This document shows positions 30,986 to 40,043 of a stretch of DNA of 64,000 bases, in pieces. Every line of letters begins with the position of its first letter. Within the stretch, counting starts at the first letter, position 1. Below the pieces are notes generated by a model that was not told where the DNA came from, did no database searches, and saw only the letters and a program-made list of their open reading frames with translations. Made by a program: the position numbers and the translations under genes. The stretch spans positions 186,001 to 250,000 of IMG/VR virus record IMGVR_UViG_3300028676_000003, one strand, 5' to 3'.

Positions 30986-31003
30986 AAATATTTCACTTTT
31001 TAC

Positions 31004-31034
31004 TTGCATATTGAAAATTATTGTAGTACCTTTG
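31004..31034 (+). promoter_or_regulatory. Bacteroidetes-type sigma70 promoter (-33 TTG, -7 TACCTTTG); representative of many copies
   Basis: Same motif and 23-nt offset at 37282/37305, 38598/38621, 42761/42784, 48167/48190, 49013/49036. Confidence 0.8.
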
Positions 31035-31072
31035 TACCACATTAGAAATAACAAATTAAAACAAAAGAAATT

Positions 31073-32512
31073 ATGAGTACATTATTGAAAGCAATGCAAA
31101 CTAAAGATTCAGTTACTGAAAACGGTATGGCAACAAACTCTACTTCATTGAACAACTCGGTTGATTTATTCTTCCAAATTGGTGCAATGAGAGGGCAAGA
31201 CAAACAACGCCTTATTAATGCATTCACGAAATCTTTTGGTGAAAATCCGTTAACAGCTATGAAGTTGTTATTTTGGGCACGTGACGTAAGAGGTGGTGCT
31301 GGTGAAAGACAAATCTTTAGAGATATTGTTGCTTACTTAGCTACAAACCGTACTGAAACACTAGCGAAAAACGTTGGTTTATTTGCTGAATATGGTAGAT
31401 GGGATGATATCTTGGTATTATTCGGTACTCCATTGGAAGCACAAGCTTTAAGCTTAATCGCTGAAGCGTTGGCAAACAAAAACGGTTTATGTGCTAAGTG
31501 GATGCCACGTCCAAACGTTAAGAACCGTGAGGACAAAAGAATCGCTAATACAATTAGAAAACACTTGGGGTTAACACCTAAAGAGTACAGAAAATTGTTG
31601 GTTGAAAATTCTAACACTGTTGAGCAATTGATGTGTGCTAAAGAATGGTCAAAAATCGAATACTCTAAATTGCCTTCAAAAGCAATGAGTGATTTGATGA
31701 AAGCGTTTTCTAAAAATGACTTGGCTAGATTCCAAGCATACTTATCAAGTGTAGAAAAAGGAGAAGTTAAGATAAATGCTAGTGCGGTTTACCCATACGA
31801 CATTTTGAAAAGCTTAATGCAAGGTAATACCAAAGGTGCTAACGTACAATGGACTGCTTTACCTAACTACCTTGAAGGAAGCAAAGAAATCTTCATTCCA
31901 GTTGTTGATACTTCGGGGTCAATGTTTTGGGATTCTGCTAAGATTAGTGGAGACTTGTTCGCAGGTCACGTTGCAATGTCATTAGGTATGTATATCTCAG
32001 AAAGAAACTTAGGTGTTTTCCAAGATGCATTCTTAACATTCAACACTCGTCCTGAGCTTCATGTGTTAAAAGGTACATTATCTGAAAGATATGAACAATT
32101 GAGACGTTCACCAGTTGGTGGAAGTACAAACCTTGAAGCGGTTTACACACTATTGTTAAACAAAGCGGTAGAACACAGTGTTCCTGAAAGCGAAATGCCT
32201 ACAATGATTATGATATTTTCGGATATGGAATTCAACCAAGGTACAAGCGGGAACTACTCAAATACTGCTCAAGAGATTGCTGAGAAAAAATACGCAGACG
32301 CTGGTTATAAAATGCCAAAGGTTGTTTATTGGAACTTAGCATCTAGAAATGACAAAAACAAACCAGTTCAATTCGACAAGAATGGAACAGCCTTAGTGTC
32401 AGGATTCAGTCCAGCACTTTTAGGTAGTTTGTTAGGTGGTAAAGACATGACACCATACTCAATGATGATGGAAGTTATCGGAGCTGAACGTTACTCTAGA
32501 GTAACAATCTAA
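31073..32512 (+). CDS. TROVE/Ro60-related protein with vWA domain (DUF2828-like)
   Basis: 'TENG', 'RDVRGGAGER', 'YGRWDD', 'AKWMPR', MIDAS 'DTSGSM', 'FSDMEF'. Confidence 0.8.
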   Translation: MSTLLKAMQTKDSVTENGMATNSTSLNNSVDLFFQIGAMRGQDKQRLINAFTKSFGENPLTAMKLLFWARDVRGGAGERQIFRDIVAYLATNRTETLAKNVGLFAEYGRWDDILVLFGTPLEAQALSLIAEALANKNGLCAKWMPRPNVKNREDKRIANTIRKHLGLTPKEYRKLLVENSNTVEQLMCAKEWSKIEYSKLPSKAMSDLMKAFSKNDLARFQAYLSSVEKGEVKINASAVYPYDILKSLMQGNTKGANVQWTALPNYLEGSKEIFIPVVDTSGSMFWDSAKISGDLFAGHVAMSLGMYISERNLGVFQDAFLTFNTRPELHVLKGTLSERYEQLRRSPVGGSTNLEAVYTLLLNKAVEHSVPESEMPTMIMIFSDMEFNQGTSGNYSNTAQEIAEKKYADAGYKMPKVVYWNLASRNDKNKPVQFDKNGTALVSGFSPALLGSLLGGKDMTPYSMMMEVIGAERYSRVTI

Positions 32513-32564
32513 AACAAAAATATGGAGTGGGAAACTGCTCCATATCTTTCAAATATTGTTTAAA

Positions 32565-32761
32565 AAGATGTATTCTGCAAAATTAAAACAAAAAAATTAA
32601 ACAGATACTATTAACGATGAAAAGGGGGTCTTTCCTTTAAAAACAGATTACCAACAAGGGCCACAAAAGAAGATTAAGGATTGCCTTCCTACTTTAGTTT
32701 ACAGTAACAACACAATGGGTAAAATCTTACAGGGTTCGATGATAAAGCCCCCGCATCTTGA
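32565..32761 (+). ncRNA. Putative structured RNA, repeated motif copy A
   Basis: AAGATGT/GCATCTT closing stem, ATTCTGCAA after 5' strand, followed by terminator. Confidence 0.5.
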
Positions 32762-32881
32762 AACAATCAAACAAAATAGCTCCTTTTAGGGGCTTTTTTT
32801 GTTTTATGTCTTTACTCATAATTTTTTTTTATGTAGTTTTGTTTATAAATTTAAAAATAATACTATATTTAAGAATATAAC

Positions 32882-33118
32882 ATGAAGACAATCGTTGTAA
32901 AAGAACTAAATAAAAAAGAATCCGTTTCAGAATACATTATCTATCTTATGGTAGGTGAAAATAAAAGGCCCGTACAAGCATTTACTGAAATTGGTGAAGA
33001 AAATAAAAAACTTAGAGTTAATGATATAATTCTAGAACATTTCGTTGACCACGAGACGTTAAAATCACACAATAAAATAATACTAGAAGATATCCTTTTT
33101 GAAGAGTATCTTAAATAA
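32882..33118 (+). CDS. Hypothetical protein
   Basis: ORF track. Confidence 0.5.
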   Translation: MKTIVVKELNKKESVSEYIIYLMVGENKRPVQAFTEIGEENKKLRVNDIILEHFVDHETLKSHNKIILEDILFEEYLK

Positions 33119-33127
33119 TCAAAGAAA

Positions 33128-33475
33128 ATGGAACAACACCCTTTAATTATCGTCTTTTATCTTGATGAAGATATGATGAGACAACCTGAAATAATTCAAC
33201 CATTCGCAGAATCAATCAACGAAATGCTTATTTATAAAAAAGTTAATGCACTTGCATTCTTTATTCCAACAAAAGGAGAAGAAAGAGTTGAATGTATCAA
33301 CCCTGTAGTATTACCTGAAGCAGATGTAGCTAAGGTTTATAAAATGATAGATGATATCAAAGAAAGCTTCGCAATTGGAGTTGATATTGATGTTGATATC
33401 GAAGATGTGGACCTAGACGTTCAATACAAGCCTTGTGATTGTGGTAATAACCCTGATGGAGCATGTCAATGCTAG
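33128..33475 (+). CDS. Hypothetical protein with C-terminal Cys cluster
   Basis: 'CDCGNNPDGACQC'; TAG stop. Confidence 0.55.
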   Translation: MEQHPLIIVFYLDEDMMRQPEIIQPFAESINEMLIYKKVNALAFFIPTKGEERVECINPVVLPEADVAKVYKMIDDIKESFAIGVDIDVDIEDVDLDVQYKPCDCGNNPDGACQC

Positions 33476-33620
33476 AACCAAGCATAGACCCAACATCAAG
33501 TTTTGATGTCAAAAAGGAATGGGTTGAAAAATATCTCCAAAAATCATGGAAAAAAAATAATGAGAATGACGAACAAGATTTGCCAATTTTCAAAAAAATA
33601 AGACAAATAATTAAACAAAA

Positions 33621-33809
33621 ATGACAAATCAAGAAAAAGCAGATTTCTACGATGCATGTATCAGAGAAAATGACAGATTACTTAGAGAAAATTCTAAGAT
33701 AAAATCAGACTTCGCTGGTAACATACCACCTGAGTTAGACTTACAAATAAAACGAAACGAAGAAAGAATCGCTTTATTAGTTGGAAAGATTGAGCAAATG
33801 ATGAGATAA
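33621..33809 (+). CDS. Hypothetical protein
   Basis: ORF track. Confidence 0.5.
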   Translation: MTNQEKADFYDACIRENDRLLRENSKIKSDFAGNIPPELDLQIKRNEERIALLVGKIEQMMR

Positions 33810-33813
33810 TATT

Positions 33814-33838
33814 AAACCCGCTAAATGCGGGTTTTTTT
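33814..33838. terminator. Terminator between convergent genes
   Basis: AAACCCGC-TAAAT-GCGGGTTT plus T tract. Confidence 0.7.
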
Positions 33839-34493
33839 ATGGACGGGTACTAGTTCTTCTTATCTTGGTGTAAGGCCAACCAGTTTCATCATGTATCAAG
33901 TCATATAGACGGGTCATAGTCGCTGGTGTTGCAGTACCCATAAATAATAGACTCTTTATCTTCTGTTTCTTGGCAATCTTAGCTAGTGTATGGTGCAGAC
34001 GTTGAGCTTCTTCAAGGTTTTTACAGATTACCATATCAAATTGTTCTTCATTATAGATAATTAGCTTATTATGAGCTATGATTATCTGTTTAACTACCTT
34101 TTTTGAGTGTGCGTTTACCATAAGACGCTTAACAATCTCGGTAATTGTCACTCTATCAGTATCGTTAGGTAGTCCATATATCCAAAATGTTTCTTCAATA
34201 TCGTATGTATCGGAAGTAAGGATGGTCCAATCACCTAAAGGAGCCTCAGTATAAAGCTTTCCTAAGTCATCTCTTCTAATTCTGAACACATCTCCTTCTT
34301 CGGTAACCTTTGTGATGCATATTTCAAACTTAACTGGTCTGATTCCGTGACTATTAATTACTTTTTTCGGAAAATAGACCTTATTTTGTTCTTTGAATGA
34401 ATAAAACTTGGTATAAACTGTTTCTAAGGTATTACATTGGTATAGTGTTTTTTTATATTCTCCATTTGAGAGCAAAACAACTCGGTATTTCAT
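33837..34493 (-). CDS. Hypothetical protein
   Basis: 218 aa ORF with no competing + strand ORF. Confidence 0.6.
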   Translation of the reverse strand: MKYRVVLLSNGEYKKTLYQCNTLETVYTKFYSFKEQNKVYFPKKVINSHGIRPVKFEICITKVTEEGDVFRIRRDDLGKLYTEAPLGDWTILTSDTYDIEETFWIYGLPNDTDRVTITEIVKRLMVNAHSKKVVKQIIIAHNKLIIYNEEQFDMVICKNLEEAQRLHHTLAKIAKKQKIKSLLFMGTATPATMTRLYDLIHDETGWPYTKIRRTSTRP

Positions 34494-34552
34494 TTTTTAT
34501 TTGTTTTTATGGAATAAATATAGTACTTTTGTACAATAAATAAATAACATAG

Positions 34553-35581
34553 ATGAAAAAAAGAGATTATTATGAAATTCTAGGGGTAACCAAAGAATCC
34601 TCTGCTAATGATATCAAGAAAGCATACCGTAAATTAGCTAAGGAACTTCACCCTGATGTTAATCCAAACAACACAGACGCTGAAAACAAGTTTAAAGAGG
34701 TATCTGAAGCCTATGAACACTTATCAGACAAACAAAAAAGAGCACACTACGATAGAATGGGTCATATGTCGGGTCCTAACAGACAAGACATGGATAACCA
34801 ATTCAACGATATATTCAGATACAGCCAACAAAGACCAATCAGAACTGGTAATAACTTAAGTGTTATAATTAAATTAACTCTTGAAGAAATTTATTCAGGT
34901 GTTACAAAAACATATAAGTATACTAGAGATGTTAAGTGTAATGTTTGTGAGGGTCACGGTGGTCATGATGTACATGACTGTCCAACTTGTCATGGAATGG
35001 GTGAAATCGCTAGAATGTATAAAACACCTTTCGGAGTTATCCAACAAGGAGAATTATGTTATTCTTGTCATGGAACTGGTGAAACAACCAAAACACCATG
35101 TGGTACTTGCCACGGAACTGGTCTTGAAAAAGAAGAAACAACTGTTGAACTTGAAATACCTTCAGGTGTAACTAATAATATAACAGTAGCAATGAATGGA
35201 AAAGGTAATGCTATCAAAGGTGGAACCTATGGAAATCTTCATTGTACAGTAATGGAACTTCCTCATAAGGTATTCATCAGAAATGGTAATGACCTTAGAA
35301 TGAACCTAAAATTAACATATCCACAACTTATACTTGGTGATAAGGTTGAAATAGAGACCATAGGTGGCAAGAAAATTAGAATTACGATAGCTGAGCTCAG
35401 TAATATAGGAACGAACCTTAAAATAGCCTCAAAAGGGCTTATACCGCTAGGTGAGACCGAATCTAAACGTGGCGATTTGATAATTACCCTTGGATTGGAC
35501 ATTCCGAAGGAAATTGACGATGAAACGAAGAGCTTAATCATTGATTTAAAGACTAAAATGGATGCAAGTAAAATTTCTTAA
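34553..35581 (+). CDS. dnaJ: DnaJ chaperone
   Basis: J domain with HPD; four CxxCxGxG repeats. Confidence 0.95.
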
Positions 35582-35653
35582 GGAAAATGTTGCAACCAAT
35601 ACTTCTAAATAGTACCTTTGTATAACAATAAAAATAAACAATTAAATATAAGT

Positions 35654-36103
35654 ATGGGAAAGTACATAGAACCGTTTGAAGACACAGTTTTAGAATTTGA
35701 AGCAAAAATTAGAGAAGCTGGATTAGATGTTTCAACAAACATTAAAATTATCACAGATAACAAATTGAAACCTGAAATTTTCAGTGTTAAGAAATGTTCT
35801 CCAATTGAATCATATAAAACTGGTGATGATGTTAATATCTTTTTAAACGAAGACATTTTTGACAAATTACCTGATGATTTACGAGCATTAACAATAATCG
35901 AAGCATTGGCTTGGGTTTCATATGATTCAGAAAAGGATGTAGTAGCGGTTAACGCACCTGACTTTAAAGCTCACTCAATGGTTTTAGCTAAACACTCGTA
36001 TGAAGAAATGGTTGTTCTTAAAGAATCAATCAAAACTCTTTTACAAGTGCAAAAAGAAGCTGAAGATGCTGAAAAAGCGGCAAACAAGAAAGCTAGACAA
36101 TAA
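35654..36103 (+). CDS. Hypothetical protein
   Basis: ATG after TACCTTTG promoter. Confidence 0.55.
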   Translation: MGKYIEPFEDTVLEFEAKIREAGLDVSTNIKIITDNKLKPEIFSVKKCSPIESYKTGDDVNIFLNEDIFDKLPDDLRALTIIEALAWVSYDSEKDVVAVNAPDFKAHSMVLAKHSYEEMVVLKESIKTLLQVQKEAEDAEKAANKKARQ

Positions 36104-36106
36104 GTC

Positions 36107-36508
36107 ATGACACAAGAAGAGATTCATAAGGTAAATCCCAAGGTAATAGTTTGGGATTTTTTAGATGAAGCAATAATGGGTATCGCAAACAAGGAATTGG
36201 ACGGACCCATTGTTGTAACTCTTTCTGAAGACCCTGAAACACTTGTTTTAGAATTTTTTGATAATGAAGAAGAAACATATGACAATTGGGGTAGACGAGA
36301 GTTTGGACCTGTAGTTGCATATGACATTAATAAAATCATAGATATTCTAATGAGAGATGTAAGTGTTAATGAGAATGATTTAGAAGACGGAATGACGGTA
36401 GAAGATGCAAAGTATGAGACAGCGTTGGAGTACTTTGAATTTAATATTGACGGTGCTTGGGTTGGTGAATTTACACCTATACATATCTTAGTTAAAGAAG
36501 AAGAATAA
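36107..36508 (+). CDS. Conserved-looking phage hypothetical protein
   Basis: 'LDEAIMG', 'ALEYFEFNIDGAWVGEFTP'. Confidence 0.6.
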   Translation: MTQEEIHKVNPKVIVWDFLDEAIMGIANKELDGPIVVTLSEDPETLVLEFFDNEEETYDNWGRREFGPVVAYDINKIIDILMRDVSVNENDLEDGMTVEDAKYETALEYFEFNIDGAWVGEFTPIHILVKEEE

Positions 36509-36528
36509 AAACAATAAAAACAAAATAA

Positions 36529-37269
36529 ATGAATTTAGTAAACGATTTTAAAAATTATGCTATCAAGCATATCGGATGTTCAGAGTATGACTTTCAAATT
36601 TGGGAAGAAATGCAAGGTCAAATCTATAATCCAAGCGTAGTAGCTAATATGTATGCAGGTGGAGTTGTTAGTGAACCAAAAGCCTCAATGACACCATATA
36701 TCTTAGAAGAAAGAGAAATGCGTGTAACACAAATGGATATCTTTTCACGTCTTATGATGGATAGAATTCTTTGGTTGGCAGGTCCAGTAAATGATAGAAT
36801 GAGTACTGTAGTACAAGCACAGCTTATGTTCTTAGATAACTTAGAAGTTGGAGATATTACTCTACATGTGGATTCACCTGGTGGGTCGGTTAAGTCAGGT
36901 CTTAGTATTGTTGACGTTATGAACTATATCTCTTCAGATATCATCACAATCAACACAGGTATGGCGGCAAGTATGGGAAGTATCTTATTAGGTGCAGGAA
37001 CCAAAGGAAAACGTTACTCTTTACCAAACTCTAGAGTTATGCTTCACCAAGTTTCAACAGGTGCTCAAGGTACAATGGCAGACGTTAAGATTTCTATCGC
37101 TGAAGGTGAAAAATATAACACGAAATTATTCGGTATGTTAGGTGAGTACACTGGAAAAGACCCTGAACAAATTATGATTGATGCTAACCGTGATTTATGG
37201 TTAAGTGCAGAAGAAGCTAAGGCTTATGGGTTGGTTGATGGTATCATCACAAAAAAAATTACAAAATAA
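36529..37269 (+). CDS. clpP: ATP-dependent Clp protease proteolytic subunit
   Basis: 'DIFSRLMMDRI', 'SPGGSV', 'AASMGS', 'MLHQ', 'RDLWLSAEEA'. Confidence 0.95.
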   Translation: MNLVNDFKNYAIKHIGCSEYDFQIWEEMQGQIYNPSVVANMYAGGVVSEPKASMTPYILEEREMRVTQMDIFSRLMMDRILWLAGPVNDRMSTVVQAQLMFLDNLEVGDITLHVDSPGGSVKSGLSIVDVMNYISSDIITINTGMAASMGSILLGAGTKGKRYSLPNSRVMLHQVSTGAQGTMADVKISIAEGEKYNTKLFGMLGEYTGKDPEQIMIDANRDLWLSAEEAKAYGLVDGIITKKITK

Positions 37270-37382
37270 TTCATTTTTTACTTGTTTTTAGTAAATTAAT
37301 GTAGTACCTTTGTAAAACAAAATAAGATATGTGGGTTTTTTTATCGGAACCCACATATTTATTTACAAGTTCTTAAATTTAT

Positions 37383-37754
37383 GGGGATGCCAAGGTATTG
37401 ACTGTCTAGTAGTACGAGGTAAGCATGTAGTGAGATGACAACTATCACTTAAATCTATGTTATCAAAAATGTAATTGACAACGATTTATTCGTATCAGAA
37501 AATTTCTTCGATGAAGCTGTAATGGTTTCTACAAGAGAGCTTGCAGTAGCCTAATACTTGCACATGGTTGTATACAACCTGATGATAGTAATCTATCAGA
37601 ACCCATTTTCGTCACTGTGGTAAAGAGGCGAGGTTTGATGATAGTGTAAACCTTAATAACACCTTTTAAAGATTGCTGGTTATATGAATCAGATAAACAT
37701 GTAGAAAAAATCGTGGTATTATCCAACACAGGGGTTCGATTCCCCTCATCTCCT
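37383..37754 (+). ncRNA. ssrA: tmRNA
   Basis: GGGGATG/CATCTCC acceptor with G3-U70, 3' T-arm GGGGTTCGATTCCCC, internal tag frame 37477-37554 DNDLFVSENFFDEAVMVSTRELAVA*. Confidence 0.9.
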
Positions 37755-37886
37755 CAAAAACAAATGCTTTAACAGCTACTATCCCTACCAAGGAACACTA
37801 GTAATATTATGCCAATTATATCGTCTATAATTGGCATTTGTTTTTAACTCTTTCAGTTTTTCACATATTTATAAATAAAAAAGAAT

Positions 37887-38159
37887 ATGGGTAAGATTAT
37901 GCAAGATTTAGTAAACAGTTTCAAGACAAGCGCAGGTGGATTTAGTTCAAGAAAATTAACCGCATTTGTTATCGTATTTTTGGTTGTATTAACTCATATT
38001 AAATGGTTAACACTAGGAAATTTGTCACAATTAGAAATGGTTTTGACAATTGACTACGGATTTATTTCAGCATTGTTTGGTATGACAACATATCAGACAA
38101 TAAAAAAGAAGAATGATGCTACAAAAGAAGAATCGAAAGACGAAACTAAGGTAGAATAA
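37887..38159 (+). CDS. Holin-like two-TM protein
   Basis: 'FSSRKL', two TM segments, charged C-tail, ATATTTATA motif upstream. Confidence 0.5.
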   Translation: MGKIMQDLVNSFKTSAGGFSSRKLTAFVIVFLVVLTHIKWLTLGNLSQLEMVLTIDYGFISALFGMTTYQTIKKKNDATKEESKDETKVE

Positions 38160-38292
38160 AAAAGGCCCTCAAAGGGCCTTTAATTATTTTTTAGGTGGTT
38201 TGCAACCACATCCGTTTTGTGTGTTCATAGCATTTAAGTATTAGTTTACGTTATTCTTACAATAATAAATATTTGAAATAATAAAAATAATT

Positions 38293-38562
38293 ATGTTTAA
38301 CGAAAAATTTAATATATTTTCTTTTATCATAACCATTAAAAATCTCTTTAAAAAGAAATATACTGTCAACATATTAGATAGTAAATGGCAAGTTATATCA
38401 GAAGATGTTAAACTTGAAAAGATTCCAAGACAAGATGAATATATTTGGAGCGGGACAAGATACTATCAAGTAATCAATATTGTCCACATATTCAACAAAA
38501 AACAACAAATTTTAATAATTGTAGAGGAACTTACAAGTAATGAAATCACTGATATTCAATGA
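38293..38562 (+). CDS. Hypothetical protein
   Basis: ORF track. Confidence 0.5.
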   Translation: MFNEKFNIFSFIITIKNLFKKKYTVNILDSKWQVISEDVKLEKIPRQDEYIWSGTRYYQVINIVHIFNKKQQILIIVEELTSNEITDIQ

Positions 38563-38669
38563 GTTAAAAAATAATTTAAAAATAAATTGAAAATTACTTG
38601 ACTTGAATTAAAATAATTAGTACCTTTGTATATATTTATTTGAAAACGTTCTTACAAATTATCATAAAA

Positions 38670-38887
38670 AAGATAGGTCCAGCAACCAAACAAACAAACA
38701 GCTAAGAAAATCCTGAAAGATGGAAAATTCGGAAGATAACCGAGGGTAAGCTAAATCACAACATCATTACCACCCCAATAGGTGCAAGTAGGGTGTAACC
38801 ATCGGGATGATGGTCACTGCCAAAGCAAAGCCGAAGATGTAAACAGGGTTAATCTGCCGAGATGAAAAACACGAAAAACTATCTTGA
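38670..38887 (+). ncRNA. Putative structured RNA, repeated motif copy B
   Basis: AAGATAG/CTATCTT closing stem, GTCCAGCAA; first element after the 38621 promoter. Confidence 0.5.
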
Positions 38888-38977
38888 GATAAAAAATATT
38901 GTTATTTACATACTAGAGATGTATGACACTTGATGATTGATTAAGTGATTGGTGAAATCCCAATATAACAAACATAT

Positions 38978-39050
38978 TGCGGGGTAGAGCAGTTGGTAGC
39001 TCGCAAGGCTCATAACCTTGAGGTCGTCCGTTCGAATCGGGCCCCCGCTA
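38978..39050 (+). tRNA. tRNA-Met(CAT), initiator-like
   Basis: Cloverleaf, CAAGG-CTCATAA-CCTTG, 1:72 mismatch. Confidence 0.9.
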
Positions 39051-39079
39051 CTAGAATCGTGAGGATTTAAAACTCAAAT

Positions 39080-39152
39080 TAGTGATATCGTCTAAGTTTA
39101 AGATGGCTCCCGTGGAGGGAGTTGATAAAGGTTCAAGTCCTTTTATTGCTAC
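39080..39152 (+). tRNA. Atypical tRNA-like element, anticodon unclear
   Basis: Acceptor TAGTGAT/ATTGCTA, T-arm AAAGG-TTCAAGT-CCTTT, arm CTCCC-GTGGA-GGGAG. Confidence 0.55.
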
Positions 39153-39158
39153 ACATAT

Positions 39159-39229
39159 TGCGGTTTAGTGTAATTGGTAACATGACGGGCTCATAACCCG
39201 AAGTCGAGGTTCGAGTCCTTGCTCCGCTA
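39159..39229 (+). tRNA. tRNA-fMet(CAT)
   Basis: GGG/CCC anticodon stem, CTCATAA loop, 1:72 mismatch. Confidence 0.85.
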
Positions 39230-39236
39230 CAGATAA

Positions 39237-39299
39237 AGAATAGTTACAGCAAATTAACAAAAATTTTTAATGGTATAAAAAACAAACATGCTATTCTGA
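39237..39299 (+). ncRNA. Putative structured RNA, repeated motif copy C (minimal)
   Basis: AGAATAG/CTATTCT stem, TTACAGCAA; terminator follows at 39312-39338. Confidence 0.45.
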
Positions 39300-39364
39300 A
39301 CTTATAAAAAGAACCTCATCATATCGGTGAGGTTTTTTATTTTAAAACAATAAATAATTTAACA

Positions 39365-40043
39365 ATGGGAAAACTTAATTTAGAAATCCGTGACGCAGAA
39401 GGTGGAACTGATGCGAAGTTGTTAGTAAGTGTGATGAAAGAAATCTACACGAAAACAGCTAAAAATAACAATTTAGAATGTACAGTAGTTGAGGAAAGAA
39501 ATGGGTTCGCCCATCTATGTCTTTAGCGGGGCTGATGTAGATAAAATATTCGGAAACGAAGTAGGAAACCACAGATGGCAAAGGGTACCGCCTACGGAAA
39601 AGAAGGGTAGAGTTCACACAAGTTCTATTACAGTTGCAATTCTAGGAGAAAACGATTATCAAGAGGTTGAAATATACCCAAGTGAATATCGCTTAGAAAC
39701 AACAAGAGGAACAGGAAACGGTGGACAACATAAGAATTCAACAGATTCTTGTGTGGTTGTAACTCACATTTCAACTGGAATAAAGGTTGTAAGAGATGGA
39801 AGGGACCAACATAAAAACAAAGCAGAAGCACTAAAAGAAATTCATTTAAGAGTTAATAATTTCTACAAGACAGGTCACGATGATGCGGCCAGTCAAGAAA
39901 GAAAAGAACAAATAGGTGACGGTGGACGTAGTGATAAAAGAAGAACGTATAGAGTTAAGGACTCATTAGTAATTGACCACGTAACGAATAAAACTGCTTC
40001 AATGAAGGACATATTAAGAGGTAAAATTGAACTATTATCATAA
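39365..40043 (+). CDS. RF1-type peptide chain release factor lacking domain 1, expressed by predicted +1 frameshift at CTT-TAG (39521-39526); about 225 aa
   Basis: Frame 0 MGKLNLEIRDAEGGTDAKL...HLCL*; +1 frame has 'HRWQRVPPTEKKGRVHTS' (PxT), GGQ and 'RSDKRRTY'. Confidence 0.85.

Follow-up and report, generated by a model that had tools for sequence, protein, structure and literature searches.

We describe a family of small RNAs that are encoded by a bacteriophage and linked to the gene for a Ro60-like protein in the same genome. The source is IMG/VR record IMGVR_UViG_3300028676_000003, a virus genome of 368,549 bp that CheckV rates complete and that originates from a peat or soil metagenome; the stretch of 64,000 nucleotides analysed here (bases 186001–250000 of the record) is called the window, and positions refer to it unless given as genome positions. 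Three intergenic elements in the window (copies A, B and C; Table 1) share a closing stem with a short conserved motif, here termed the handle, and differ in what the handle encloses. Ro60 binds the terminal stem of Y RNAs, and Ro60–Y RNA particles occur from bacteria to humans, with a mechanism that is poorly understood. The handle RNAs are probably the partners of the phage's own Ro60-like DUF2828/DUF7788 protein, which would bind them much as Ro60 binds Y RNAs; they would be functional analogues, and in part relatives, of the latter. A sequence-only reading of the window had proposed that the elements near a TROVE/Ro60-like gene form a family of Y-like RNAs whose modules can be exchanged, and this proposal is supported by stem covariation, by genomic linkage in both directions, by the fold of the protein and by YrlA-like inserts.

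The common handle comprises a 7-bp closing stem, followed on the 5′ side by NUN-CWGCAA and on the 3′ side by an unpaired G. Copies A, B and C carry NNN-C(A/T)GCAA 3′ of the 5′ strand and GA 3′ of the 3′ strand; the coordinates, stems and motif of these three elements agree with the sequence-only reading, except that the GA tail it had listed shrinks to the G in relatives, where the following A is not invariant. The degenerate 16-mer ARRATRKNNNCWGCAA matched four times in the 368,549-bp genome, on the + strand only, and its backward-read control did not match at all; a looser stem-plus-motif script and a covariance model bring the genome total to six copies (A–F). Because the generic stem-plus-motif script has a noise level of about nine hits per genome, the case rests on relatives and not on counts within a single genome. 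Likewise, single-sequence minimum free energy folding was no better than that of shuffled sequences (z = 0.57, −0.98 and −0.59 for A, B and C, respectively), and support for the elements comes from comparison with relatives rather than from folding energy. Model R1 scored copy C at 52.9 bits, copy C being itself part of the seed alignment. No open reading frame (ORF) of at least 40 aa lies over copies B or C, and the sole one at copy A, a marginal 40-aa ORF with a TTG start (32758–32880), touches only its last bases. Two metatranscriptome runs contain 7–9% of the sampled words of positions 31000–39400.

For comparison with relatives, 80 viral loci were fetched, the encoded protein being 54–77% identical to that of the window. 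To evaluate the stem, 22 short copies from 20 loci were aligned, and it covaries strongly: 99.4% of cells are paired, both sides change in six of the seven pairs, and 51 cells are compensatory. The covariation score was 0.865, as against 0.20 for shuffles (0 of 500 reached 0.865) and 0.11–0.17 for slid partners. Conservation is superimposed at defined places, the second pair being G-C in 21 of the 22 copies and the fifth U-A in all 22; U..CAGCAA and the unpaired G past the 3′ strand showed no variation. The AAG/AG start and the C-N-G end are kept as well, the G in 22/22 copies, but conservation does not extend to the final U. Copies D and F, like their counterparts in a related 362-kb phage, sit between tRNAs with gaps of 0–10 nt; between tRNA-Gln and tRNA-Tyr the stems of the two phages differ and yet remain complementary (AAAAUGA/UCAUUUU vs AGGGUGG/CCACCCU).

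We then evaluated the linkage between handle RNAs and DUF2828 genes in both directions. Under a stringent rule (a stem of 6 bp, a spacer of 3 nt, C[ATC]GCAA, 3′ strand followed by N and G, no more than 700 nt downstream), a handle RNA was found downstream of the DUF2828 gene in 64 of 76 loci, starting at a median of 28 nt after the stop codon, and the controls returned 1/76 (reverse complement), 1/70 (upstream) and 0/76 (inside the gene). Eight of the 12 loci missed by the rule carry a visible element with one mismatch, and counting by eye gave at least 72 of the 76. Many loci have two or three tandem elements, and arrays also exist in which handle RNAs of different kinds follow one another, two to five in number. 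In the opposite direction, 30 of 33 complete handles with an exact GGTTCCTTACAGCAA in IMG/VR adjoin a DUF2828 gene, compared with 1 of 22 incomplete matches (Fisher, 5e-11), and the three remaining complete handles all lie in tRNA arrays. Co-occurrence with DUF2828/TROVE genes, a check named in the sequence-only reading, was thus found for DUF2828, with the qualification that the DUF2828 protein has no Pfam TROVE match. A few phages (L098, L128 and L139) carry the handle RNA upstream of the DUF2828 gene instead of downstream. Some 20–30 exact matches of the GGTTCCTTACAGCAA 15-mer in IMG/VR were set aside as chance occurrences, being in unrelated, G+C-richer sequence with no 3′ strand.

The gene 5′ of copy A encodes a protein (hereafter the 31073 protein) that belongs to PHROG 850, annotated 'RNA-binding protein' (E 4e-144). 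Its AlphaFold model (AF2, alignment of 66 diverse relatives) reached a mean predicted local distance difference test (pLDDT) value of 92.3; a single-sequence run (pLDDT 41) was discarded. In Foldseek searches of the PDB, the best matches were full-length and were to TROVE/Ro60 structures, with 9kop, 9l5y, 2i91, 1yvp and 2nvo at the top (E 1e-9 to 1e-6). Taken together, the best matches (E 1e-9 to 4e-5) come from Thermus phage phiLo (TROVE protein and Ro60 dimer), from Xenopus and human (Ro60) and from Deinococcus (Rsr); TM-scores were mostly 0.5–0.6, with lower values for 2nvo (0.33) and 9nen. Lower-ranked PDB matches were isolated von Willebrand factor A (vWA) domains. Among Swiss-Prot structures the top five were Ro60 of mouse, human, Deinococcus, Xenopus and C. 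elegans, followed by telomerase p80. The model therefore portrays the 31073 protein as a full-length Ro60 look-alike in fold, the predicted similarity being structural only; the earlier label 'TROVE/Ro60-like' is right at the level of the fold because of these full-length structural matches, and does not extend to a Pfam TROVE assignment.

Aligned relatives of the 31073 protein share an invariant D279-x-S281-x-S283 (DxSxS), T352 and D384, which on the alignment can be read as a putative site of the MIDAS type (MIDAS, metal ion-dependent adhesion site), and the helical half has invariant or near-invariant basic residues at R40, R70, R73, R79, R109, K142, R146 and R173. One ESM Atlas cluster carries the TROVE, DUF2828 and DUF7788 labels together. 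The protein family is very large: 6,923 of 8,000 scored candidates in a 90%-identity collection had E ≤ 0.001 (best 70–77% identity), and a 50%-identity representative library yielded 6,595 relatives at the same threshold, mostly viral by ESM Atlas taxa. DUF2828/DUF7788 proteins also occur in plants and other eukaryotes, as plant papers report. The literature searched contained no described function for these proteins and no RNAs linked to them.

The inserts enclosed by the handle are of several types. The type A insert has an A-rich linker, variable hairpins and, beside the 3′ strand, a conserved 3′ module (CUUC..ACNGGGUUAGAAG..GCCCC) in which CUUC/GAAG and GGG/CCC helices interleave as a pseudoknot; three sequences carry GC↔AU double changes in the GGG/CCC helix, and the CUUC/GAAG helix is conserved with no covariation. 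Type A orthologues were aligned from 19 loci of the closest relatives, always 3′ of the DUF2828 stop codon. By eye only, the type A hairpin loops pair with a downstream stretch and co-vary between loci. The type B insert is marked by the words ACCACCCCAAUAGGUG..AAGUAGG..GCCGAAGA..CUGCCGAG..ACGAA; 15 aligned orthologues have a mean column identity of 69%, with double changes in 11 of 22 predicted pairs, and copy B had no Rfam match at E ≤ 10.

Other inserts contain parts resembling tRNA. Across all candidate elements we counted 25 T-arm hairpins, as against 0.1 in shuffles, and in one subclass of handle RNAs the handle encloses a T arm together with a closed acceptor-like hairpin and a D arm, which is the permuted tRNA-like domain by which bacterial YrlA is defined (PMC4201824). 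The Rfam YrlA model matches this subclass with 28.7–38 bits (E 6e-5 to 0.03), all scores lying far below the gathering score of 69 bits (RF02553). Clear YrlA-like domains are present in loci L133, L135, L098 and L121, and one occurs in the genome under study at genome positions 286623–286700 (29.3 bits, E 0.02; closed 7-bp hairpin); copies A, B and C of the window do not have the domain, and gave no Y_RNA (RF00019) or YrlA match at E ≤ 10. These inserts are not tandem tRNAs, because their acceptor-like part is a closed hairpin and ARAGORN called no tRNA. Locus L133 has five RNAs in a row, first a minimal one, then a YrlA-like one, a tRNA, one with a T arm and a second YrlA-like one, with the same handle on all but the tRNA. 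YrlA-like inserts under the shared handle are the strongest tie of this family to Y RNAs. The domain at 286623–286700 lies in a degenerate handle (CAGCAU, one stem mismatch) at genome positions 286590–286728 (about 1209–1347 of locus L088), a probable seventh copy outside the window. A weak YrlA match at 49203–49322 was rejected; it consists of two tandem tRNA-His genes, the type of false positive described in PMC4201824.

The handle RNAs resemble the YrlA–Ro60/Rsr system in several respects: the RNA adjoins the gene of a protein that resembles TROVE plus vWA in predicted fold though not in Pfam family, its ends form a closing stem, a genome has several different RNAs, and some members contain the permuted tRNA-like domain. 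They differ in that the phage protein belongs to DUF2828/DUF7788 and not to Pfam TROVE, in that the phage stem is a short, perfect 7-bp helix with a single-stranded CWGCAA whereas YrlA stems are longer and interrupted, and in that most phage members lack the tRNA-like domain. As in animals, where Y RNAs pair one common protein-binding stem with different loops, there are several small RNAs, and the presumed partner has the same overall fold. By score the handle family is a member of no curated family, the Rfam search proposed earlier having returned sub-threshold YrlA and RF01414 matches and nothing that reaches a gathering score; by analogy it would work most like Ro60 with Y RNAs.

Several results weigh against an assignment of the handle RNAs as partners of the Ro60-like protein. 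On the RNA side, every Rfam match of a handle RNA falls below the gathering score, Rfam Y_RNA gave no match at E ≤ 10 within 32400–39450, the handle does not align with the YrlA model's outer stems, and it lacks the bulged helix with conserved Ro60-site sequence of animal Y RNAs. The conserved single-stranded motif could also serve some other protein as a recognition site, or could base-pair with a target RNA. On the protein side, the 31073 protein has no match to Pfam TROVE (PF05731), and its sequence profile reached only E 0.08 against PDB Ro60. Furthermore, three or four DUF2828 loci have no downstream RNA, and in a complete 360-kb relative (G003, locus L034), where a terminator directly follows a DUF2828 gene of 58% identity, the model detected no short handle RNA; in that phage either the handle has diverged or the protein works without handle RNAs.

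With the handle RNAs as partners of the DUF2828/DUF7788 protein, the following mechanism may be proposed. The 31073 protein, putatively ring-shaped by its likeness in fold, would bind the constant handle in the way that the terminal stem of Y RNAs is bound by Ro60. The interior would be a swappable module (nothing in copy C, a T arm, a YrlA-like domain, the pseudoknot of copy A or the 200-nt structure of copy B), which may recruit or mimic other factors. Since different modules would engage different factors, one protein could form several ribonucleoproteins. Copy A would form the 3′ end of the mRNA that encodes the protein, with the DUF2828 gene, copy A and a terminator forming a single unit behind a promoter motif; the order of gene, RNA and terminator recurs in relatives. 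Copies B, C, D and F would be made inside tRNA operons, of which the putative second unit in the window (promoter, copy B, three tRNAs, copy C and a terminator-like hairpin) is one, and the RNAs would be freed when RNase P and 3′ processing enzymes cleave at the flanking tRNAs. The likely role would be RNA surveillance or repair, or a takeover of tRNA or RNA-decay factors, in a phage that has 62 tRNA calls genome-wide, a transfer-messenger RNA (tmRNA), a release factor and two Rnl2-type RNA ligases.

The close association with tRNAs also suits a different explanation, by which the handle is a maturation or stability signal for another factor, and the Ro60-like gene is only a frequent operon neighbour or its product acts on the RNAs without contacting the handle. 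That factor could be a host RNase, an enzyme of tRNA processing or a protein with an RNA recognition motif (RRM) like Rnp1A of Dictyostelium. Several copies abut tRNAs, copy C starting 7 nt 3′ of a tRNA-Met, and tRNA processing would cut them out; the 7-bp stem has the length of an acceptor stem and is followed by one unpaired base; and the direct binder shown for one of the similar Dictyostelium Class I RNAs is an RRM protein (PMC7919456). We nevertheless consider this explanation rather improbable, given that the linkage to DUF2828 is tight both ways, that the fold of the 31073 protein is that of the family which binds this kind of terminal stem, and that copy A and its 19 orthologues carry the handle as well, with no tRNA directly beside them.

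Still less probable is action in cis, in which copy A would stabilise or attenuate the Ro60-like mRNA from its 3′ untranslated region and copy C would be a leader controlling the release factor (RF) gene. Copy A does lie between stop codon and terminator, and copy C just 5′ of a terminator-like hairpin and the RF start, which had led the sequence-only reading to suggest a regulatory copy C. Nothing else points to such control: copy C is the last RNA of the promoter–B–tRNA–C–terminator unit, and comparable copies are wedged between tRNAs in a related phage. Moreover, handles are found between tRNAs far from both genes, here and in related phages, as well as in the tandem arrays of different handle RNAs, and the inserts are large, conserved structured modules. 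That the elements are merely decayed or rearranged tRNA genes without function, as their T arms, D arms, acceptor-like hairpins and location in tRNA arrays might suggest, is highly improbable and already largely refuted by conservation and covariation: the stem covaries, NUN-CWGCAA, the invariant U-A pair and the 3′ G, none of which is a feature of tRNA, are kept across phages whose proteins are only 54–77% identical, tRNA parts are absent from minimal, type A and type B copies, and neither ARAGORN nor the Rfam tRNA model called a tRNA on copies A, B or C.

That phages can encode Ro60 together with Y-like RNAs was already known (PMC4201824, PMC12135203); the system described here would differ from Ro60 with Y RNAs in its protein family, its different and simpler handle and its wider set of inserts. 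The DUF2828/DUF7788 relatives point to a second, very large branch of Ro60–Y RNA-type systems, with a handle of its own that is unusually simple and well defined and a natural repertoire of exchangeable RNA modules, and a testable function can be proposed for these proteins. The compactness of the system would also make it suitable for studying how different RNAs re-target one ring protein.

Class I RNAs of Dictyostelium are abundant and affect development, by a mechanism that is unexplained, and they have been reported as unique to Dictyostelia. Besides tRNA, tmRNA and YrlA, the corresponding family RF01414 (Dicty_Class_I_RNA) was the only Rfam family to match the phage RNAs repeatedly. Copy C scored 33.4 bits (E 0.0021 in 7 kb), and further matches were obtained in loci L133 (30.8 and 27.9 bits), L059 (30.7 bits) and L079 (28.8 bits); each of the five covers model positions 1–56 and lies exactly on the element. 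No phage copy reached the gathering score of 41.5 bits, and most short copies in the nine loci searched had no RF01414 match at E ≤ 1.

According to Kjellin et al., Class I RNAs have a terminal stem of variable sequence with pairing kept, an (A)AG start with an invariant G, CCUUACAGCAA 3′ of the 5′ strand, a CUG(U) end and a variable A-rich remainder, at about 60 nt in all; in the 11-nt motif CCUUACAGCAA, T3, C6, C9, A10 and A11 are near invariant (PMC7919456). The phage RNAs are alike in their short end-joining stem with pairing kept over sequence, (CC)UUACAGCAA directly past the 5′ strand, the variable, A-rich remainder with a total of about 60 nt, and the inserts, which Class I has in a few longer members. 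Their ends correspond in part, with an (A)AG start that includes a conserved G-C pair and a C-U-G end of the 3′ strand, in which the G is constant and the U that closes CUGU is not kept. The motif of copy C is UUACAGCAA, copies A and B keep only C6, C9, A10 and A11, and relatives of the phage carry the exact 11-mer CCUUACAGCAA, as in GGUUCCUUACAGCAA. The two groups are unlike in host, a bacteriophage and not an amoeba; in the spacer, one base shorter in the phage than in D. discoideum; in transcription signals, the phage having a bacterial-type promoter or a tRNA operon instead of the Dictyostelium upstream sequence element (DUSE) found about 60 nt upstream in amoebae; and in the large inserts of many phage members.

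It is conceivable, albeit doubtful, that dictyostelid Class I RNAs are of the same kind as the phage RNAs, namely minimal Y-like RNAs whose handle docks a DUF2828-type Ro60 relative, inherited or acquired together with the protein. A common origin or a shared mode of recognition is, at a similarly tentative level, a live possibility and not a finding. If true, dictyostelids would have a DUF2828/DUF7788 protein that binds Class I RNAs, one candidate being DDB_G0281243, a protein of unknown function that was pulled down with DdR-21 (bioRxiv 10.1101/2020.04.05.026054); neither this protein nor DUF2828-type peptides turned up in the truncated proteome tables searched. The direct protein binder shown for a Dictyostelium Class I RNA is an RRM protein (PMC7919456). 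The comparison gives a concrete, testable hypothesis for these long-unexplained RNAs. In addition, the long D. discoideum Class I RNAs DdR-66 and DdR-67 contain the insert words GUAGGAU, AUAGGUG and ACCACCCC, which also occur, in a different order, in the type B core (ACCACCCCAAUAGGUG..AAGUAGG; 38760–38800) and could be a chance likeness between G/C-rich complementary segments.

The region around copies A–C contains genes for RNase HII, the DUF2828/DUF7788 protein, DnaJ, ClpP and a release factor, together with the tmRNA and many tRNAs (features in Table 1). The phage GenBank collection held no close relative of the region. The motif TAGTACYTTTGTA occurs 13 times in the window, each time on the + strand (0.45 expected), and precedes the genes for the DUF2828 protein, DnaJ and the tmRNA as well as copy B; it is read as the phage's promoter, which we take to be of the Bacteroidota TAnnTTTG type. 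The hairpin after copy C was missed by the terminator scan because its stem has few G-C pairs.

Table 1 Handle RNAs and neighbouring features (window positions, except where marked as genome positions).
Feature	Position	Strand	Details
Gene for 479-aa Ro60-like protein	31073..32512	+	Pfam DUF2828 (E 4e-35) and DUF7788 (E 7e-43)
Copy A, type A insert	32565..32761	+	Stem AAGATGT 32565–32571 / GCATCTT 32753–32759; G at 32760
Copy B, type B insert of ~200 nt	38670..38887	+	Stem AAGATAG 38670–38676 / CTATCTT 38879–38885; G at 38886
Copy C, minimal handle, 61 nt, A-rich loop	39237..39299	+	Stem AGAATAG 39237–39243 / CTATTCT 39291–39297; G at 39298
Copy D	genome 271429–271506 (outside window)		Between tRNA-Val and tRNA-Leu; T arm added
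Copy E	genome 286885–287012 (outside window)		T arm and further hairpins
Copy F	genome ~301199–301256 (outside window)		Between tRNA-Gln and tRNA-Tyr
Promoter motif TAGTACCTTTGTA	31024..31036	+	5′ of Ro60-like gene; −7 box TAnnTTTG
Promoter motif TAGTACCTTTGTA	38618..38630	+	~40 nt 5′ of copy B
Intrinsic terminator	32778..32800	+	Closes unit of DUF2828 gene and copy A (terminator scan)
tRNA-Met, tRNA-Pro, tRNA-Met	38978..39230	+	Co-oriented, between copies B and C
Hairpin with U-run, terminator-like	39312..39339	+	Closes B–tRNA–C unit; 25 nt before RF gene; read directly from sequence

A weaker candidate of the sequence-only reading, located after the tmRNA (37761–37840), was rejected as a handle RNA: its motif is CAGCTA, model R1 did not match it, and the intrinsic terminator of the tmRNA gene lies inside it at 37809–37837. 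This candidate is only a terminator. The stretch 37761–37843 folds very stably (z −4.5), with a long-range AAACAAAUGC/GCAUUUGUUU pairing that encloses the tmRNA terminator.

Several further features of the genome were observed. The two Rnl2-type RNA ligase genes lie outside the window (genome 253976–254566 and 306408–306917), and no RtcB was found in the phage genome. The RF gene (39365–40043) is in two frames, split at CTT TAG C with the stop codon at 39524–39526; the site has the shape of the prfB +1 frameshift with UAG in place of UGA, and in-frame readthrough of the stop would meet TGA two codons further on. After a +1 shift the product would be short (about 226 aa), without domain 1 and with an RF1-type RVPPTE motif and GGQ. 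Autoregulation of an RF1-like gene by a frameshift that senses UAG would be unusual. The amber stop codon would be read by a tRNA whose anticodon is CUA (42804–42879, labelled 'Pyl' by ARAGORN), and this tRNA, the RF1-like factor and the tmRNA (37383–37757) share one genome.

Finally, two small ORFs (78 and 115 aa; 32882–33475) with no Pfam or PHROG match lie 3′ of the gene–RNA–terminator unit. By eye only, ORFs with similar openings follow the terminator at the same position in many relatives (L005–L030), and the two could be further partners of the system.

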